Shown piece by piece: positions 18,483-32,369 of a stretch of 64,000 nt of DNA. The stretch is from Lepidodermella squamata. Taxonomy: Eukaryota; Animalia; Gastrotricha. The stretch's first letter is position 1. Each line of letters begins with the position of its first letter. The stretch covers positions 3,906,001-3,970,000 of the forward strand of contig JBLDXI010000007.1 in the NCBI GenBank assembly GCA_047495785.1, written 5' to 3'. The position numbers were made by a program, and so were the translations under genes. The notes below the pieces were generated by a model. That model did not search any database. It saw only the letters and a program-made list of their open reading frames with translations, and was not told the origin of the DNA.

Positions 18483-23626
<5,144 letters not shown>

Positions 23627-24754: not shown

Positions 24755-27700
24755 TCACAGTATGATGCACTTGGATTCCTTCCTCGCCGCCCGAGGCACA
24801 GCTGCGGGAGGCTCAAGTCTTCCCGGTGGAGGTGCGGGTGCAGGACGTCGCAAGAGATCGTCAAAATAACCGCCAACTTCCCTGCCGATCTGCATGTGCA
24901 ACGGCAGCTCGTGTCTAGCTTGATTGGCCAGTCGGTGAAGAATCTCGTCACCGTCGTAGTACTGAGCATCGTATGCCGCTGGTCGTTGCACCTGAACTCG
25001 AACCGGTCTATCCTCAGGTTTGCGTTCGACAACACTGCTCAAATTGATTTCAATGCCGTTATCCGCTAGGTCCTGTTGAATCGACTGAAGAACGTTCATG
25101 CGAACCTGCTCGTCACTCAGCGTCTTCAGATAGGCGATCACTGCCTGCGACTTGTTTTGCTTTTGAATCCGAAGAAACTCATCGGCTGAACAAAAGTACT
25201 CGTTCGGCGAAGGGTTGAATTCGCAGGTCCGGACGTGAGCATGAGCATCTGCTCCGCAGTCGACAAGGCAAAACCCGCAAAATTTGGCCTGGCAGTTAGG
25301 GTCTGCGCAAGTTAGAGCGAGGCAGCCGTCGAAGTCGAAAAACACCTAGAGGAAAGCGCGAAAAAGATATAATTTGCAGCGGAACTCCTGCTCATATTTG
25401 CGTTTTCCCCATTAAATCATAGACTGTAGCGAAAACGTTGTATACGGCACTACCCGCAAATATTATGATCGTATTAAACCCAGAGCTGGAAATAATTCCC
25501 TCAAATTAAAGTTAGCGTCTCAGCTTTTTTAACTGTGCCTTTAAATGACAACAGCTGAGCATCCCGCAAATACCCTCTCTTTCCTGGGAATGAATAATAA
25601 ACGTCGAAACTGCATACTTTTTTGCAGCGGGGGCATTTAAGGTTGAGAATTTCATTGAGGATATGCGCACAGTGTCGGTGGACGCTGCCGTCCGCAGATC
25701 GAAACCTCACAGCTCGGCAGTAGTAACCTCTGTGGGCAACTCGAGCTGTTTTTGCGTGGTCACTGCAGGACAGGCAGTAGAATTCCTCGCATTGATCGCA
25801 ATAACCAACAGATTCACCGCCATTACGCGTCTCCTCCTCTCCCGCAACCGGCTTTTTGGAGAAGATTATCCTGTACAATAAAACATTTTTTCGTTACGTT
25901 TCGCGTTTCGTTTCGTAATTTTGATTTCAAAGCTTCTCACGCGACTTGGCAAGTCAAAATTACCATGGTTGCACTTGTATAAACACCTGTGTTAAAACAG
26001 GCTGTTTAAACACATGTTTAAACTGTATAAAGTCCGAGGGTTTATACATGTGTATAAAGTCCTAATAAAAATGCCCCAAATTACTTAAAAAATCAGGAGG
26101 ATTCCGCCATAATCGTGAATCTTTTATAGCACTGATGCAAATCTGGATTACTCGCTGCAATTTATCGTATTTGATGATGTGCTGATGTTGCATATCCCTG
26201 AAATTTTTATCATTCACGAAAAACGAATAAGTTTAATTATTCACAAGAGCGCCATACAAACTAATTCTAGGCCTCGTGAGCGTTGCTCTGAAATTTAACA
26301 TGTTTTCGTTAAGATTAAAATGTTAGTGCACAATTAACTTCAAATTCAGATTAAAAATTAGGCCGGCCTGGACGCACGTACCAGAAAATTTCAATTTTGA
26401 AACAGCCTATTGAAAGCCGCCCTATTTTTGTGCGTGCATTTCGTTAGAAGGACTGGAGCATTAGCGCGTGCATCTTCCGTTACAAAGCATTGAATTTTGG
26501 GCATTAGGGCGCGCACCTACGAATGCCTCACTATTTCAAATCAGACCCTTGGCAACCAAAAGGAGTACTGGGATGAACGAAGTACTCACCCGTCACAGCC
26601 TTCTTTTACGCAGCGCCTGTGCCTTTGGGAATTATCCTTCAAAAAACAATCGATCATTTGCCGCTTCAGCTTTGGCATCTCCTTGTCAGTACAGAATGTT
26701 GTAATGTCATTCGTGACCATAAACGCACCGCAGTTTTCCTGCAAGCATTTGATTGGAAGCTGAATGATCTCCTGCTGGAACATGCTCGATAAGCACTCCC
26801 TATGGAATGAATGGCCACACGACACGAGAACCGCATCTGTTTCGTCGCACAGACAAATAGGACAGTTGGAATCGTCCTTTGTCAGCAGTGACTTCTGCTG
26901 AGGCGCCACGTGAACGAGACCAACCTTCAACTGCTCAACAGCACTCTTATCTCCGGTGGCCAGTAGCTTGTTGCCGCTGAAAATTAAATGCAATAGTTTG
27001 TGAGTCTTTTGAAGGGAAGCCGTGGTATCCTGAATTCTCTGCCGGTGTTTAACGGCTATCAATATCGGCTCGTCTAGTACAAGTCCCTCCAGAGTAGCGA
27101 TTAAACGATTTAGTTTGCCCTGCTCCCGATCTTTGCATGCTTCTGACCCAAAAATTTTGATGACCCTGGTTGCGTAGTCCACATGGATCGTTCTTGAAGT
27201 TTTGCAAAGCTCAGAAAGGCGAATAGAGCCGTAATTTGTGAACAATTTGGTCTTTGACGGGTGCTGGAAAACAACGGCTGTCATCATTGGCTGGAACCTG
27301 GATCTAGCGTCGTCGATGTCAATTTCGCCCTTCGAAGTTCGGAAAAACAACACAGCTGGCCTCTGCTTCTGCTCATAATGAGCTTTAACATTAACCTTTC
27401 CCTCGTTGTTAATTTTCGAGACCAAGTCGACGAATTCCGCTTTGCGACTCTCCCAAAGGAATCGTTCGATAGACATTCGCTGCGTGAATTCAAGTTCCAA
27501 CCTAATCGGCTGATAGAAGTTCGGAGGCAGGTGGCAGCGCCGTAGTGCATCCATCACGACCTGAGCATCAGCTGCTTGATCGAACGGAATGTAGACGCAA
27601 CCACGCACAGCTTTTTCCTGGAAAACAATGTCGACGTCATCCTCCTCGCAATCGAAGGGGAGTTCTCCGTTATTCAGCTCTGCGAGGGTATAGACGAATT

Positions 27701-30700
27701 CCCTCGCAGCTTGGGGTGACGCGCCGTTCTTCTTTCGCTTGATGTGGCAGAAATCTGGCTCTGGCAAATAGTTCACTCGAATGAATGACTTGATGTCTTG
27801 CTCGTCGACTTCTTGAGGTAATCGGCCAACGAAAACTAGGTATCGACGGCTTGGATCGGCTGATGGCGTGAATCTTGCACGATGGTATGGCTCATAGTCA
27901 TTAGCCTTAACATCCAACGCCTTCGAAAAAATTTTGCCGAACCTGTTACGCAATGGCCTGAAGCTGTGGTCCAGGAATCTGTTGCCATCAGCAGCTGTTT
28001 TGAAGGCGATAGTACACCCTCCCAGCGATTCCCCTAAAGCGAACGAAATGACGACCTTAACAGTCCTGTTGAGAACAGCAGACGGCTGTGTGGCGCCTCC
28101 AGGGATAGCACGTACTGGGAAACCTTCAATAGTCAAATCTCTCAGATTTTCAAAAGCGAGCCGAGCTTCTTCTCGATTATTGAACATTATCGTCGCTTGT
28201 TTCAGACCTTTGTCGCTTGAAATGCTGCAGTAACGAATTTCGTGGTAGTTCTGTTCCATCAGCAGCTTCAACGAGCTCTCCGTCATCTTGCTGGGAAGCC
28301 CTTTTAACACAATACTGATAAATTGCTCGCCAAGCAGCAAATCGAGAACGCGGCCGCCACCGCACCACGCCATTCGGACATTGCCAACGCAAGCCTCTTC
28401 CACAACATTGCGACACACGTCCTCTTTGTGCGAGTCGATTATTTTCTCGATTTCTTTTCGAACAATCACAGCCGCGGATGGTATGCACCAAGCCAGAAGC
28501 GTACCGCTCTCGTAATCAGCCAGCATATCTTTTATATCTGGGATTTGTTGCATGAATAAATGTTTCTCTGTGCAATTTTCACCCAGTATAATTCGAAGGA
28601 GTACCACGGAAACAGCCATCTTCACCTCTGGCTGCACGAGATTATTACGCAGTTGGTTGTACTTTGAATGCCAAAACCAATAGTCGACTTTCAAGTCTTC
28701 AAAGTCAACGGGCTCTGCCAGGTGGATGTAACACTCGCCAGCACTTTGGAAGTAATCAAGGACAACAATGCAACCGGGCAACTGTTCCCATCTATGAAGC
28801 ATTGACGAGGTGCTTATCTTGGCAGAAATTTTCCCGAGGCCGATTTGGTATTGGCGATTCGGTAGCAGAAAAGCAATGTTGTTAACAAGGGCTTGTAATG
28901 CCATCAAGCGTAGAGCCTTCAAATCATGGGTTACCACCTGCGAGTGTGACCACAAGTCAGAATTTCGGAGAATTCGCTTCAGTTCCTGGGAAAGCAGCCA
29001 AGTATTCACGATCGCTACTGAATTCAGTCCCTTTGATTTAAGCCATTCTCTAAGTTCGGGGGAGTGCGGTTCTTCGAGGGCGAGGAAGGCTTGTAAAATA
29101 TTGACATCGTCTTTGAAAACAGCACGTATCTTCTCGGCCCAAAGATTGATCAACTCGAGCATTGTAATTAGATCACCACATGCGCTGCTATCATTTTCCA
29201 ATGGTTGAAATGCAACTGGTCCTTTGAGCTGCTTAGCCGTGGTCAAAAGGGCGACAAAGAGAACTGCAGATTCACCGAAACCTAAAATGGGAGGGAATCT
29301 TATTACATTGAAGTTTGAAGTGGACATGGCTTTTCCCGGAGATTCCGAAAAATTCATGAGTTTCCAGTTTTGCCTTCACAATTTTCAATTTTCACTAGTA
29401 TAATCACTTGGTATCAACAGTAGACAGCAGTGTGTATAATGTATAATCACTATATTATCAGCTAAGAACTTACCCTGTGAACACGAATGGTGGAATAATC
29501 GGCTAATAATGGGATGGAACGGCAGGGTGGAGCAAACATCACCAATTCTGTTCAATTTTCGGGAGTCGTCAATTAGGCCAAAAAGTCGCAAGCTGGTTTC
29601 TGGTGCTATTTCTCTGAGGCGAGGGTTGACATTGAGAATGGGAAATGTGGTTTGAGCGGGAAAGTGATGCTTCATTAGCTCCAAGATGAAGGCACCACTC
29701 TTCCCATTAACATCGTTCTGCGCTGGAAATGTTTCATATTCTTGAGTTGAATAAAGCCTAACACATAGCCCGCCTCGCTTTGCTCTGGATCGCCGTTGTT
29801 CAGCGGAAGCTTTCGATATCCATTTAGATGTGAAATCAGGTGAAAAATGGCCTTCTGAAAATGAGATTTCCTAAAAAGATTTCAACACCTGTAGTATATA
29901 CCTATGTCATTTTGTCAGGGCTAAATTCACCTCATTGTAGCCGCAATCAATGACGACAGTTAAATTTTGAAACGAAACGGTTTCAGCGCATCTTGTTGAA
30001 AAAATTACTAGCCGCTCGTTTCCAATATTTAGAAAATCTTCAACTTCGTTCAAAGTCGTTTCGTCAGTTAGAACTAGAGGCAAACATTTAGGTTGCATTC
30101 CTCTCAATCTTTCCTCGCAATGCCTCATTGTAAATTCCGCCTTAAATAAAATGGTTTATCTCACTCGAAAATGAAGGAAAATGGGACAAACCTGGGTTGA
30201 ATTGGGTAAGAAGCACAACATATTCCCGTGACGCTTATTGTTTGCGATTTCGTTCGCAAATATTTCAGCCAGTTTACAGGCAGTGATGCAACTCAAATCA
30301 GCATTTCTGTAGACGACTTTCACGGGCATATCCTGGACTCCATAGAGACGAGGTATCTCGATAACAGGGCAATCGAATAGAAAGTTCGAGGCTTTTTTCA
30401 TATTAGTGCGGTTGCACAGAACAACAACTTTTAGCTCTGAGTCGCCGGAGCACAAATCGCGAAGTCGGTGTAGCAGAAGCTCAGTTTCGAGATGACCGGA
30501 ATCCAACTCATCTAAAACAACCACGCCAATGCGAGCTATATCAGAAGCAGTATGGTCGCGCGGGGATAGCTTTTCTAACAACGAAGAAGCCGTCACGCAT
30601 TCGATTTGCATCTCCGGGCTCTTTCGCGAAAATTTCTCTGTTGTCAGGCCTATATGTTTACCGGCATCGTTGATGCCGCATTCGCGATATTGCTTGGCAA

Positions 30701-31865
30701 GATTTTCCGCCATACTCACCGCTGCGATGTCGTTTAGTTGAGTAATAACCACAGTCCTGTTGTAGAACTCAGGCATTTCAGCGAGAATCAGCGGAACGTT
30801 TGTAGATTTTCCAGTGCCACAATCGCCTGAAACGACCAAGAATTGATTGCCAGATCGCAACTTCGTACTAATCTCTTGTCGAACCAGCTGGATTTGCCAG
30901 TGTGGACTTTTCAGGTTCCTGAGGTTGCGGCGTATCATCATTTTACTCAAGTTGTGATCAGGGTGAATCAACGCCTGTATTATTGCAGTATGAACATTAC
31001 TTCTGGACGCTTCTAGAGCTACGACTTCGGCGCTTTTCGATTTCGATTCCATTTCTTGGATAATTCTTTTGAAAGCTACAAAGAAAAATTAAAATATTTG
31101 AAAAATCAAGCAATTGTAATTACAAGTATCAACAGTACTCCTGAGATCCTCGTCGAAAAAGTCGAGCGCTGACATTAGAGCTGATAAACAATATTTGGCT
31201 GCGTTTATATCAACTTTTGTTAACTCGGCTGCCAGTCCGCCATCATCTATCGGCTTGTTATCCTCCGGGTGCCGAAATCTGCACGTTGATTTATTTTCAC
31301 AGGCGCTTCCGTTGCGACATTTCCGATATTCCTTTTTCTGCGGTTTTGAAATAGTTTTTGCTGCCGAAGCTACGCGGATCGACTTGTTCTTGCCCAGCTT
31401 TTCTTCTCTCGAGTGGAGCCATCTGCAGGTCGAAATTTTTTTACATACCGCTCCAGCTTCACATTTGTTTGGCCGATTGCCTGGATGTCTCAGGGTGCAT
31501 TCCAGCTCATAGCAAACATGCGCCTTCGGGCATTGCTCAGCCAAATGACTTTTCTCACACTTCATATTGTTGCAATTGTGAGGCTTTTCGCAAAGAGGGA
31601 GCGATTCAATTTCGGGTGCTATGAAGTTATTTTCGTAAACAGGATGGATTAGCTTGCAGTAACCGTGTCGTGAGCCGCCGAGGGGGCATTTCTGAGGCCG
31701 ATTACCGGGATGCCGTTTCGGGCAGTCATAGTTGCGGCAAAGATGGCCACTGTCACATTTTTCGACGATATGGCCCAGCTGACAACTCATGTTTGTACAG
31801 TCCTTGGGCTTCTTACAGCAATTTACCCTGGCTCCATCCTTCGATATGGCTGTATTTTGTTCCAT
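24755..31865 (-). CDS. Multi-CCCH zinc finger + DEAH-like helicase (HA2/OB) + RRMs + RBR E3 ligase with C-terminal CaaX, ~1917 aa; exons 31865-31139, 31075-30192, 30140-29931, 29870-29474, 29281-26590, 25870-25618, 25345-24755
   Basis: Seven C-x5-C-x4/5-C-x3-H fingers (one degenerate); P-loop GDCGTGKST; VVLDELD; LCFLP; VVIDCG; ISKASAEQRR; RRM-like segments; RING1 CPIC..CGHSFHRECL; IBR; RING2 CPRC..DGCLALTC..FCGFC; ends KCIIL. Six GT-AG introns keep frame (5754 nt). Confidence 0.85.
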
Positions 31866-32369
31866 TTGCTAAATTTATGTCCAAATATGTTCCTATCAAG
31901 TCAAAATTTTAGAGTGTTAAATCATCAGTTGATGAATGAAATAAACATAGTTTCTTATATACCTAGATGGATTTTAAAGCCATCATTAAAAGCTCAATGT
32001 AGCATCTATGGGCCGTTCTTACAGTATAAACATGCATCTATTTACTACTGTAGAAACATATAGAAAGTCAGAAGGGTCTGTAGTATCCATGTTTAAACAA
32101 ATACCTATGCGTGTGTGAACGCATGCGAAATATAAATCCCAGCTCACTGCCATGCCGATAATATACTATGCAGCGCAGCAAAAAAAATGCAAAAAAAGCA
32201 TCGTCAATAATATGAATCATAGCTGTGCGATTAAAGCACTAATAATAAGCTTAAATAATAATAGTAGCAGTTTATTGAAAAATCGATATTCCGTCCAATA
32301 CTTAACATTAGATTGCCTAAAGACAAAGGTATTTACACCATTTAGCGATTTGCGTTGTGCAGGTGGTTA

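Follow-up and report, generated by a model that had tools for sequence, protein, structure and literature searches.

Does an animal gene that joins tandem zinc fingers, a helicase core, RNA-binding folds and a complete ubiquitin ligase represent a local invention for sensing RNA, or an old protein that has been remodeled in one lineage? The question is raised by a locus of the gastrotrich Lepidodermella squamata, situated in a 64,000-nucleotide stretch of contig JBLDXI010000007.1 (assembly GCA_047495785.1, positions 3,906,001 to 3,970,000 of the forward strand), which is referred to below as the window. The original prediction for this locus was a lineage-specific, RNA-triggered immune or RNA-surveillance ligase, in which an array of CCCH zinc fingers and a lipid anchor had been added to a fusion of a DEAH-type helicase and a RING1-IBR-RING2 (RBR) ubiquitin ligase.

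The locus is a real, well-formed, seven-exon animal gene that encodes a large predicted RNA-binding ubiquitin ligase. The explanation favored here, to which a probability of roughly 0.7 is assigned, is that the gene is a divergent member of the ancient helicase-RBR family (“Helicase/Plant I”, DEAH11/12-like), belonging to a clade termed type A, and that its product is an RNA-associated E3 ligase in which the helicase now serves as a scaffold. What had been observed at the locus was confirmed, and the interpretation placed on it was partly supported.

Gene model and exon structure

The gene lies on the minus strand, from position 31865 to 24755 of the window. It comprises seven exons, and a script check of the borders found GT...AG at each intron. 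Positions are those of the window:

31869 to 31873, minus strand: TTTAG acceptor, read from the sequence, ending 3 nt upstream of the start codon
31124 to 31865, minus strand: exon 1, with the ATG at 31865, 247 codons plus 1 nt, and a GT donor at 31123
30192 to 31075, minus strand: exon 2, a linker and RecA1 of the DEAH/RHA helicase
29931 to 30140, minus strand: exon 3, the first half of RecA2
29474 to 29870, minus strand: exon 4, the end of RecA2, the winged helix and the start of HA2
26590 to 29281, minus strand: exon 5, 896 full codons with the ratchet, OB, RRM/KH-like units and RING1
25618 to 25870, minus strand: exon 6, the IBR and the first RING2 cysteine pair (CPRC)
24755 to 25345, minus strand: exon 7, the remainder of RING2, the conserved DAHxHVxxC, a helical end, the tail and the stop codon

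The coding sequence totals 5766 nt, or 1922 codons, with matching phases and zero internal stops. This bears out the single spliced frame of about 1917 residues described earlier, the difference arising mainly from intron 4 (29473-29282), which takes out the first 26 codons of a 923-codon open reading frame (ORF). Coding use of 29357-29282, the upstream piece of this long ORF, was considered and rejected, as the phases do not fit and the relatives show an intron. The junction of exons 4 and 5 matches that of the relatives residue by residue in the alignment (HHSCSQ-G-FGESAV in the window, against YHSCRQGMGEAG), and the junction of exons 6 and 7 is likewise exact. The TTTAG sequence upstream of the start codon is probably a spliced-leader acceptor.

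All searches were run with single exons as queries, the joined seven-exon protein being the gene model. Exons 1, 2, 4, 5, 6 and 7 align collinearly to single relative proteins. In the Balamuthia protein P0150, for example, exon 1 aligns at residues 80-144, exon 2 at 266-553, exon 5 at 914-1767, exon 6 at 1785-1850 and exon 7 at 1852-1947. Exon 3 gave a phmmer match to P0028 alone, and it still aligns as RecA2 alongside the relatives. Since six of the seven exons align in order to single relatives, which is the best evidence given on this point, the exons most probably constitute one gene.

Relatives and phylogeny

The predicted protein runs from the CCCH fingers through the helicase module (RecA1, RecA2, winged helix, ratchet and OB) and the RRM/KH-like units to the RING1-IBR-RING2. 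An exhaustive HMMER search with exon 5 recovered 149 relatives at E<=1e-3, the best of them at 5e-65 and 27% identical; no relative above 27% identity was present in the collections searched. The full-length relatives have 1600-2200 residues, and the Pfam domains found across them are DEAD, Helicase_C, HA2, OB_NTP_bind, RRM_1, KH_DEAH11_2nd, RBD_DEAH11, RING and IBR. A neighboring cluster in the Atlas carries IBR, KH_DEAH11 and OB_NTP_bind. The kinship to the plant DEAH11/12 fusions, which had been proposed for the locus, is upheld by the KH_DEAH11_2nd and RBD_DEAH11 domains of the relatives and by the domains of this cluster.

The named members are Lithocolla globosa, Gefionella okellyi, Saprolegnia, Pythium, Chlorochromonas, Balamuthia, Mastigella and Acrasis. 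Single proteins with this layout, N-terminal CCCH fingers included, are found in amoebozoans, heteroloboseans, malawimonads, stramenopiles and a relative of fungi. The locus therefore shows that the CCCH-helicase-RRM/KH-RBR layout is widespread and not a local invention. As regards architecture, and leaving copy number aside, a conserved group of proteins spanning several supergroups takes the place of the lineage-specific gene that had been supposed.

Other searches were less informative. A word-index search with the long exon returned nothing in the range of 507-1615 residues, and one with the RBR of the Lithocolla protein P0004 returned the protein itself and one partial match (22% query coverage), with Pfam domains unlike those of the family. 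The word index is too coarse for kin at 25% identity. A scan of metagenome contigs with exon 5 found no relative.

The RING2 divides the exon-5 matches into two groups. In type A, which includes the window gene, it has the form CPxC..F.DF.GC.A..C...FC..C followed by DAHxHVxxC. In the other group, which includes a krill protein (P0099) and a spider protein (P0136), it is Ariadne-like, with the form GGC.HM.C..FCW.C. Type A is a supported clade in the tree, with a value of 96 in the Shimodaira–Hasegawa-like approximate likelihood ratio test (SH-aLRT). Within it, the window gene adjoins a group of Lithocolla, Acrasis and Amoebozoa and is weakly placed (SH-aLRT 84). The type A clade seems to be without a published description.

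One insect protein of type A is an observation in its own right. P0023 (KAJ6638803.1) of Pseudolycoriella hygida, the sole named insect protein of this type, is encoded on a 137-Mb contig. It nests in the oomycete clade with Saprolegnia and Pythium (SH-aLRT 98-100), has their duplicated RING2, and ends in CCIL. It could be a case of horizontal transfer or an assembly contaminant.

According to Marin (2010, PMC2904391), the helicase or “Plant I” subfamily of RBR ligases is of ancient origin and has undergone repeated loss in animals; it occurs in both unikonts and bikonts (PMC2904391; PMC3904995). A DEAH12 gene has served as a single-copy nuclear marker in clams (PMC8765752). In cotton, DEAH12 is reported to act as a repressor in development and to bind a NAC transcription factor (PMC13407882); the literature searched yielded no other functional study of the wider family.

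The RING1-IBR-RING2 ligase

The ligase part begins within exon 5 and extends into exon 7. Two of its features can be placed directly:

26730 to 26867, minus strand: RING1, of the form CPIC..CGHSFHREC..PIKC..C, matched by Pfam zf-RING_UBOX at 2.6e-6, above the cut-off
25322 to 25324, minus strand: codon of the cysteine at the catalytic position of RING2 (DGC), placed by alignment to the RING2 of ARIH1

The eight zinc ligands of RING1 align with those of the relatives, the fifth being histidine in place of cysteine, as it is in P0011 and P0015. The IBR includes CVKEGC from the end of exon 5, the rest lying in exon 6. Its ligands follow the pattern C-x4-C-x25-C-x2-C-x4-C-x2-C-x10-H-x4-C, and all those conserved in the family are present. 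Against Pfam IBR_1, exon 6 gave a non-significant E-value of 2.5; the relative P0016 matches IBR at 7.5e-5. Matches of exon 6 to formylglycine-generating enzyme in a phmmer search of the PDB were dismissed as chance.

Across the exons of the IBR and RING2, every near-invariant cysteine and histidine of the family is retained in an alignment with 20 relatives. The DGC cysteine is itself near-invariant (>=90%) across the family alignment. For the fold, the RBR of the Lithocolla relative P0004 was modeled, with the three window exons aligned to it as separate rows. This model had a predicted local distance difference test (pLDDT) score of 85, its first 43 Foldseek matches were solved RBR ligases, and an Atlas shape search with it returned mainly RBR clusters. 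The claim of a full RBR with a catalytic-position cysteine is borne out for RING1 and RING2, the DGC aligning to the cysteine of ARIH1, and the IBR, with its family ligands kept, is probable.

In HHARI, Parkin and HOIP, a histidine two residues after the catalytic cysteine acts as the general base. At this position, where ARIH1 has His359, the window gene has alanine. The alanine is found in nearly all type A relatives, which makes it a trait of the clade and not of this copy. A conserved DAHxHVxxC follows RING2 across type A (the RING2 region occupies columns ~221-254 of alignment A2), and from its residues it may form a further zinc site. These traits suggest a distinct type of RING2 without the usual catalytic histidine.

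The helicase module and its decay

The helicase module spans exons 2 to 4 and the start of exon 5. Exon 5 was folded with AlphaFold2 (AF2) using an alignment of 23 relatives, with a mean pLDDT of 78. The features of the module are as follows:

30801 to 30827, minus strand: Walker A (motif I), GDCGTGKST, with GxGKST intact
30501 to 30512, minus strand: motif II, DELD followed by SG
29775 to 29798, minus strand: motif VI, QRRSRAKR, with the arginines retained
28710 to 29279, minus strand: ratchet and OB-like beta domain, exon-5 residues 1-130 and 135-190, from the AF2 model

The identity of the module is clear from its matches. RecA1 in exon 2 matches Prp22, Prp43 and DHX36 in a phmmer search of the PDB at ~4e-15, and exon 4 (RecA2 and winged helix) matches DHX15 at 2.5e-4. 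In Foldseek, the start of the exon-5 model pairs with the HA2-OB region of DHX15, Prp43, Prp2 and DHX8, at 5e-7 to 1e-4. In alignment A1, 16 of 24 rows reach the Pfam OB_NTP_bind model; the window row does not.

The DEAH/RHA core that had been predicted is thus present as a fold, but its motif II reads DELD. Exon 2 was aligned with 18 relatives, and all 18 have DE[AV]HER at this motif (17 DEAHER and one DEVHER). Motif Ia is TQLND in the window gene, against TQPRK/Q in 17 of the 18 and VQPRK in the other. Motif III is CNRT, so that NRT replaces the SAT of the relatives' TSAT; SAT is kept in 17 of the 18, with SSAT in one. In exon 3, motif V is TRCAET in the window gene and TDVAETS in the relatives. 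The signature of a competent DEAH helicase, namely DEAH in motif II, TQPRR/K in motif Ia and SAT in motif III, is therefore absent from the window gene at all three points. The GxGKS/T of Walker A and the arginines of motif VI are present.

The extent of this decay was counted over positions that are the same in >=85% of the relatives, the threshold for exon 5 being >=80%. The window gene kept these near-invariant positions as follows:

RecA1: 28 of 62 (relatives' median 0.97)
First half of RecA2: 10 of 25 (relatives' median 0.96)
Rest of RecA2 and winged helix: 15 of 26 (relatives' median 1.00)
RBR: 43 of 46 (relatives' median 0.98), one of the three differences being an artefact of the program, which wrote methionine for the first GTG codon
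Whole of exon 5: 39 of 48 (relatives' median 0.92)

The helicase core overall retains 40-58% of the near-invariant positions of the family. As the RBR and the RNA-binding middle are largely kept while positions of the core are lost, the ligase and the middle are under constraint and the motor has decayed. Judged from its motifs, the helicase here probably no longer translocates or unwinds.

CCCH fingers and predicted RNA-binding middle region

Besides the helicase module, the parts of the protein that would contact RNA lie on both sides of it:

31269 to 31820, minus strand: CCCH array of exon 1, located by regular expression, with six canonical fingers (residues 17, 37, 92, 112, 135 and 183) and one degenerate finger (residues 60-74)
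28113 to 28313, minus strand: RRM 1, exon-5 residues 323-389, matched by Pfam RRM_1 at 1.5e-10, above the cut-off
26910 to 27842, minus strand: a second RRM-like unit with an insert (exon-5 residues 480-605) and two KH/RBD-like alpha/beta units (residues 606-790), from the model

Seven CCCH fingers had been counted at first, and six of them are canonical, of the form C-x5/6-C-x4/5-C-x3-H. The other, CPLGGSRHGYCKLIH, is one cysteine short. The array consists of two similar triplet units, each with RHPGNRPxKC placed between its second and third fingers, and the degenerate finger is the third of the first unit. This repetition suggests an internal duplication. The sole Pfam match of exon 1 is to the Nab2-type zf-CCCH_2, at an E-value of 0.02, under the cut-off.

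Arrays of CCCH fingers are also found at the N-terminus of relatives, with 4 fingers in Lithocolla, 3 in Balamuthia, 6 in Chlorochromonas, 3 in Pythium and 7 in P0030. The arrays to which exon 1 could be aligned are those of P0030, P0120, P0150 and P0006. Since such arrays are common to relatives in several supergroups, the CCCH array did not arise as an addition in this lineage, contrary to what the original prediction had supposed.

The RRM-like domains of the middle region, also predicted earlier, were recovered. RRM 1 has the beta-alpha-beta-beta-alpha-beta order in the AF2 model, and a second RRM_1 match is partial, at 1e-3. The later alpha/beta units pair in Foldseek with the multi-RRM proteins Prp24, SFPQ/NONO, SHARP and HuR. 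The same stretch in the relatives matches KH_DEAH11_2nd in 8 of 24 and RBD_DEAH11 in 5 of 24, and KH_DEAH11 is also reached among them, the counts for the three models being 8, 5 and 1. The window sequence falls below the Pfam models KH_DEAH11, KH_DEAH11_2nd and RBD_DEAH11, and its AF2 model has alpha/beta units at this place.

C-terminal tail and neighboring ORF

Beyond the ligase, the window protein carries an additional segment:

24758 to 25048, minus strand: Pro/Arg-rich tail of ~97 residues, ending RKESKCIIL, with the CaaX-like CIIL at 24758-24769

This tail is absent from 20 of the 20 aligned relatives, which end a few residues past a DLGI motif. In a CaaX box, leucine as X points to modification by geranylgeranyl transferase I. 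The CIIL end may carry a geranylgeranyl group that anchors the ligase at a membrane. What had been called a lipid anchor in the original prediction is a CaaX-ended tail specific to the window copy among the 20 aligned relatives; the lipidation itself is predicted from sequence.

An ORF on the plus strand (23168-23626) with the look of the C-terminal end of an AGC kinase is oriented convergently with the ligase gene, ~1.1 kb from its 3′ end.

Proposed function and its limits

On the favored reading, a divergent helicase-RBR ligase of type A, the helicase-shaped module would hold RNA or a ribonucleoprotein together with the fingers and the RRM/KH units. RING1 would recruit an E2 charged with ubiquitin, which would pass to the RING2 cysteine as a thioester and from there to a bound substrate. 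The helicase module would act as a binding or regulatory scaffold and not in unwinding. It may still bind nucleotide, since Walker A is left, along with the D-E pair of motif II and the arginines in motif VI. The CIIL end may be prenylated, which would leave the ligase tethered to a membrane.

Several points weigh against this reading. The window exons alone fall under the Pfam cut-offs for the IBR, OB_NTP_bind, HA2 and KH_DEAH11 families, and the joining of the exons into one polypeptide is a prediction of the gene model. The best identity of 27%, together with a long and weakly placed branch, does not tell orthology, old paralogy and transfer apart. The only named animal relative of type A is the fly protein that groups with oomycetes, and the literature search found no published function for any type A member. 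The E3 activity, RNA binding and prenylation of the window protein are predictions drawn from its sequence. The presumed loss of helicase activity is read from motifs alone, and with Asp-Glu and Walker A left, ATP hydrolysis may persist.

A bolder version of the favored reading can be put forward as a speculation, improbable as it stands. The protein would be a membrane-anchored “pseudo-helicase” E3, in which the motor, having lost its coupling motifs, has become a clamp that senses RNA or nucleotide and controls an intact RBR, and type A ligases would ubiquitinate a non-lysine target such as a hydroxyl or a nucleic acid. Such non-lysine ubiquitination is conceivable because the general-base histidine of RING2 is missing and the additional DAHxHVxxC is conserved.

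The divergent helicase-RBR member described here has a wider meaning. The helicase-RBR group is one of the few RBR subfamilies thought to be early-eukaryotic, and its function is barely known in the literature searched. The gene is a clear natural case of a ligase kept while the ATPase core decays, which argues that a module with the shape of a helicase can be of use to the ligase even if it is not a motor.

Alternative explanations

The immune or RNA-surveillance role first proposed for the gene is a weak candidate and now appears quite unlikely. The terminal branch of the window gene is long (2.35; median 1.39), as rapid evolution would have it, and the CIIL tail is unique among the 20 aligned relatives. 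By analogy, the combination of RNA-binding modules with an E3 may also be compared to known pairs of sensor and ligase. However, the CCCH array and the whole architecture are common to protists of several supergroups, and no second copy of the ligase gene was found within the 64-kb window. Sensor-type helicases need a working ATPase, yet the ATPase motifs are the very part that has decayed. The sole functional study found for the family, that of cotton DEAH12 (PMC13407882), concerns plant development.

About equally unlikely is a two-gene operon, in which a 258-residue CCCH protein (31865-31089, with its stop codon in “intron 1”) would be followed by a helicase-RBR protein starting at the ATG at 31052, with a leader added at the AG at 31077-31076. 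The position of this ATG, 23 nt past the acceptor AG, would suit such an arrangement. Just 12 nt lie between the stop codon and that AG, and the vicinity contains no AATAAA, so that a 3′ end would have no space. Intron 1 is a 48-nt GT-AG intron that maintains the frame, and in the relatives, to which exon 1 aligns, the CCCH array and the helicase are part of one polypeptide.

Horizontal transfer from a protist is very unlikely. It draws on the rows nearest the window gene in the tree, which are P0005, Balamuthia, Lithocolla and P0001, with no named animal close by. The placement of the gene, on a long branch with a support of 84, tells against reading much into this neighborhood. The six introns of the gene are spliceosomal and of the kind seen locally, and the acceptor ahead of its start codon is of the leader type. 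Because Lithocolla is itself an opisthokont, the gene could just as well have descended vertically, with losses in other lineages; repeated losses among animals are on record (PMC2904391).

That the gene is decaying into a pseudogene, as the loss of about half of the conserved helicase-core positions might suggest, is extremely improbable given its open frame of 1922 codons, its six intact GT-AG introns and the conserved positions kept in the RBR (43 of 46) and exon 5 (39 of 48), which point to selection on most of the protein.

Comparison with known systems

Among the closest known systems is the helicase or “Plant I” group of RBR ligases, represented by Arabidopsis DEAH11 and DEAH12 and by the animal “DEAH12-like” genes. 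Both this group and the window gene have an N-terminal DEAH/RHA helicase with HA2/OB, a common middle of ~750 residues and a C-terminal RING1-IBR-RING2. The link to DEAH11/12 is made by the relatives of the window gene, which match the DEAH11-specific families of Pfam, and by exon 5 itself, which also matches members with a canonical RING2, among them the proteins of krill (P0099) and spider (P0136). Unlike the canonical members, the window gene belongs to the separate type A clade, with an FxDFxGC-A- RING2 and no histidine after the catalytic cysteine. The decayed ATPase core and the additional CaaX-ended tail are specific to this copy.

Single parts of the protein can be compared with better-known enzymes. 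The spliceosomal/ribosomal DEAH helicases Prp43/DHX15, Prp22/DHX8 and DHX36 have the RecA1, RecA2, winged-helix, ratchet and OB folds and the order of motifs in common with the window gene. They are without a CCCH array, RRMs and an RBR, and unlike the window gene they have motifs Ia, II and III intact. The Ariadne-type ligase ARIH1/HHARI and other solved RBRs (HOIP, HOIL-1, RNF216 and Parkin) are alike in their RING1-IBR-RING2 fold, as judged from the P0004 model, and in the position of the catalytic cysteine. In contrast to ARIH1/HHARI, the window gene has no Ariadne domain, alanine in place of the post-catalytic histidine, and Gly/Ala in place of the tryptophan of FCWxC. The fingers resemble those of Nab2/ZC3H14 in their tandem C-x5-C-x4-6-C-x3-H spacing, and weak zf-CCCH_2 matches occur in the window gene and its relatives. 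Every one of these matches is under the Pfam cut-off, and poly(A) binding would be putative.

Type A proteins that lend themselves to comparison include those of Balamuthia mandrillaris (KAL6067145.1, P0150, 1952 residues) and Lithocolla globosa (EP00732_P000298, P0004, 1900 residues). They differ from the window protein in sequence, with 25-27% identity over exon 5, in keeping DEAHER, TQPRK and TSAT, and in having no tail past DLGI. Their domain order of CCCH, helicase, OB, RRM, KH-like and RBR is that of the window gene, and the RING2 is nearly identical, reading CPRCKKVFFDFDGCLALTC in the window and CPRCRTVFFDFDGCLALYC in Lithocolla.

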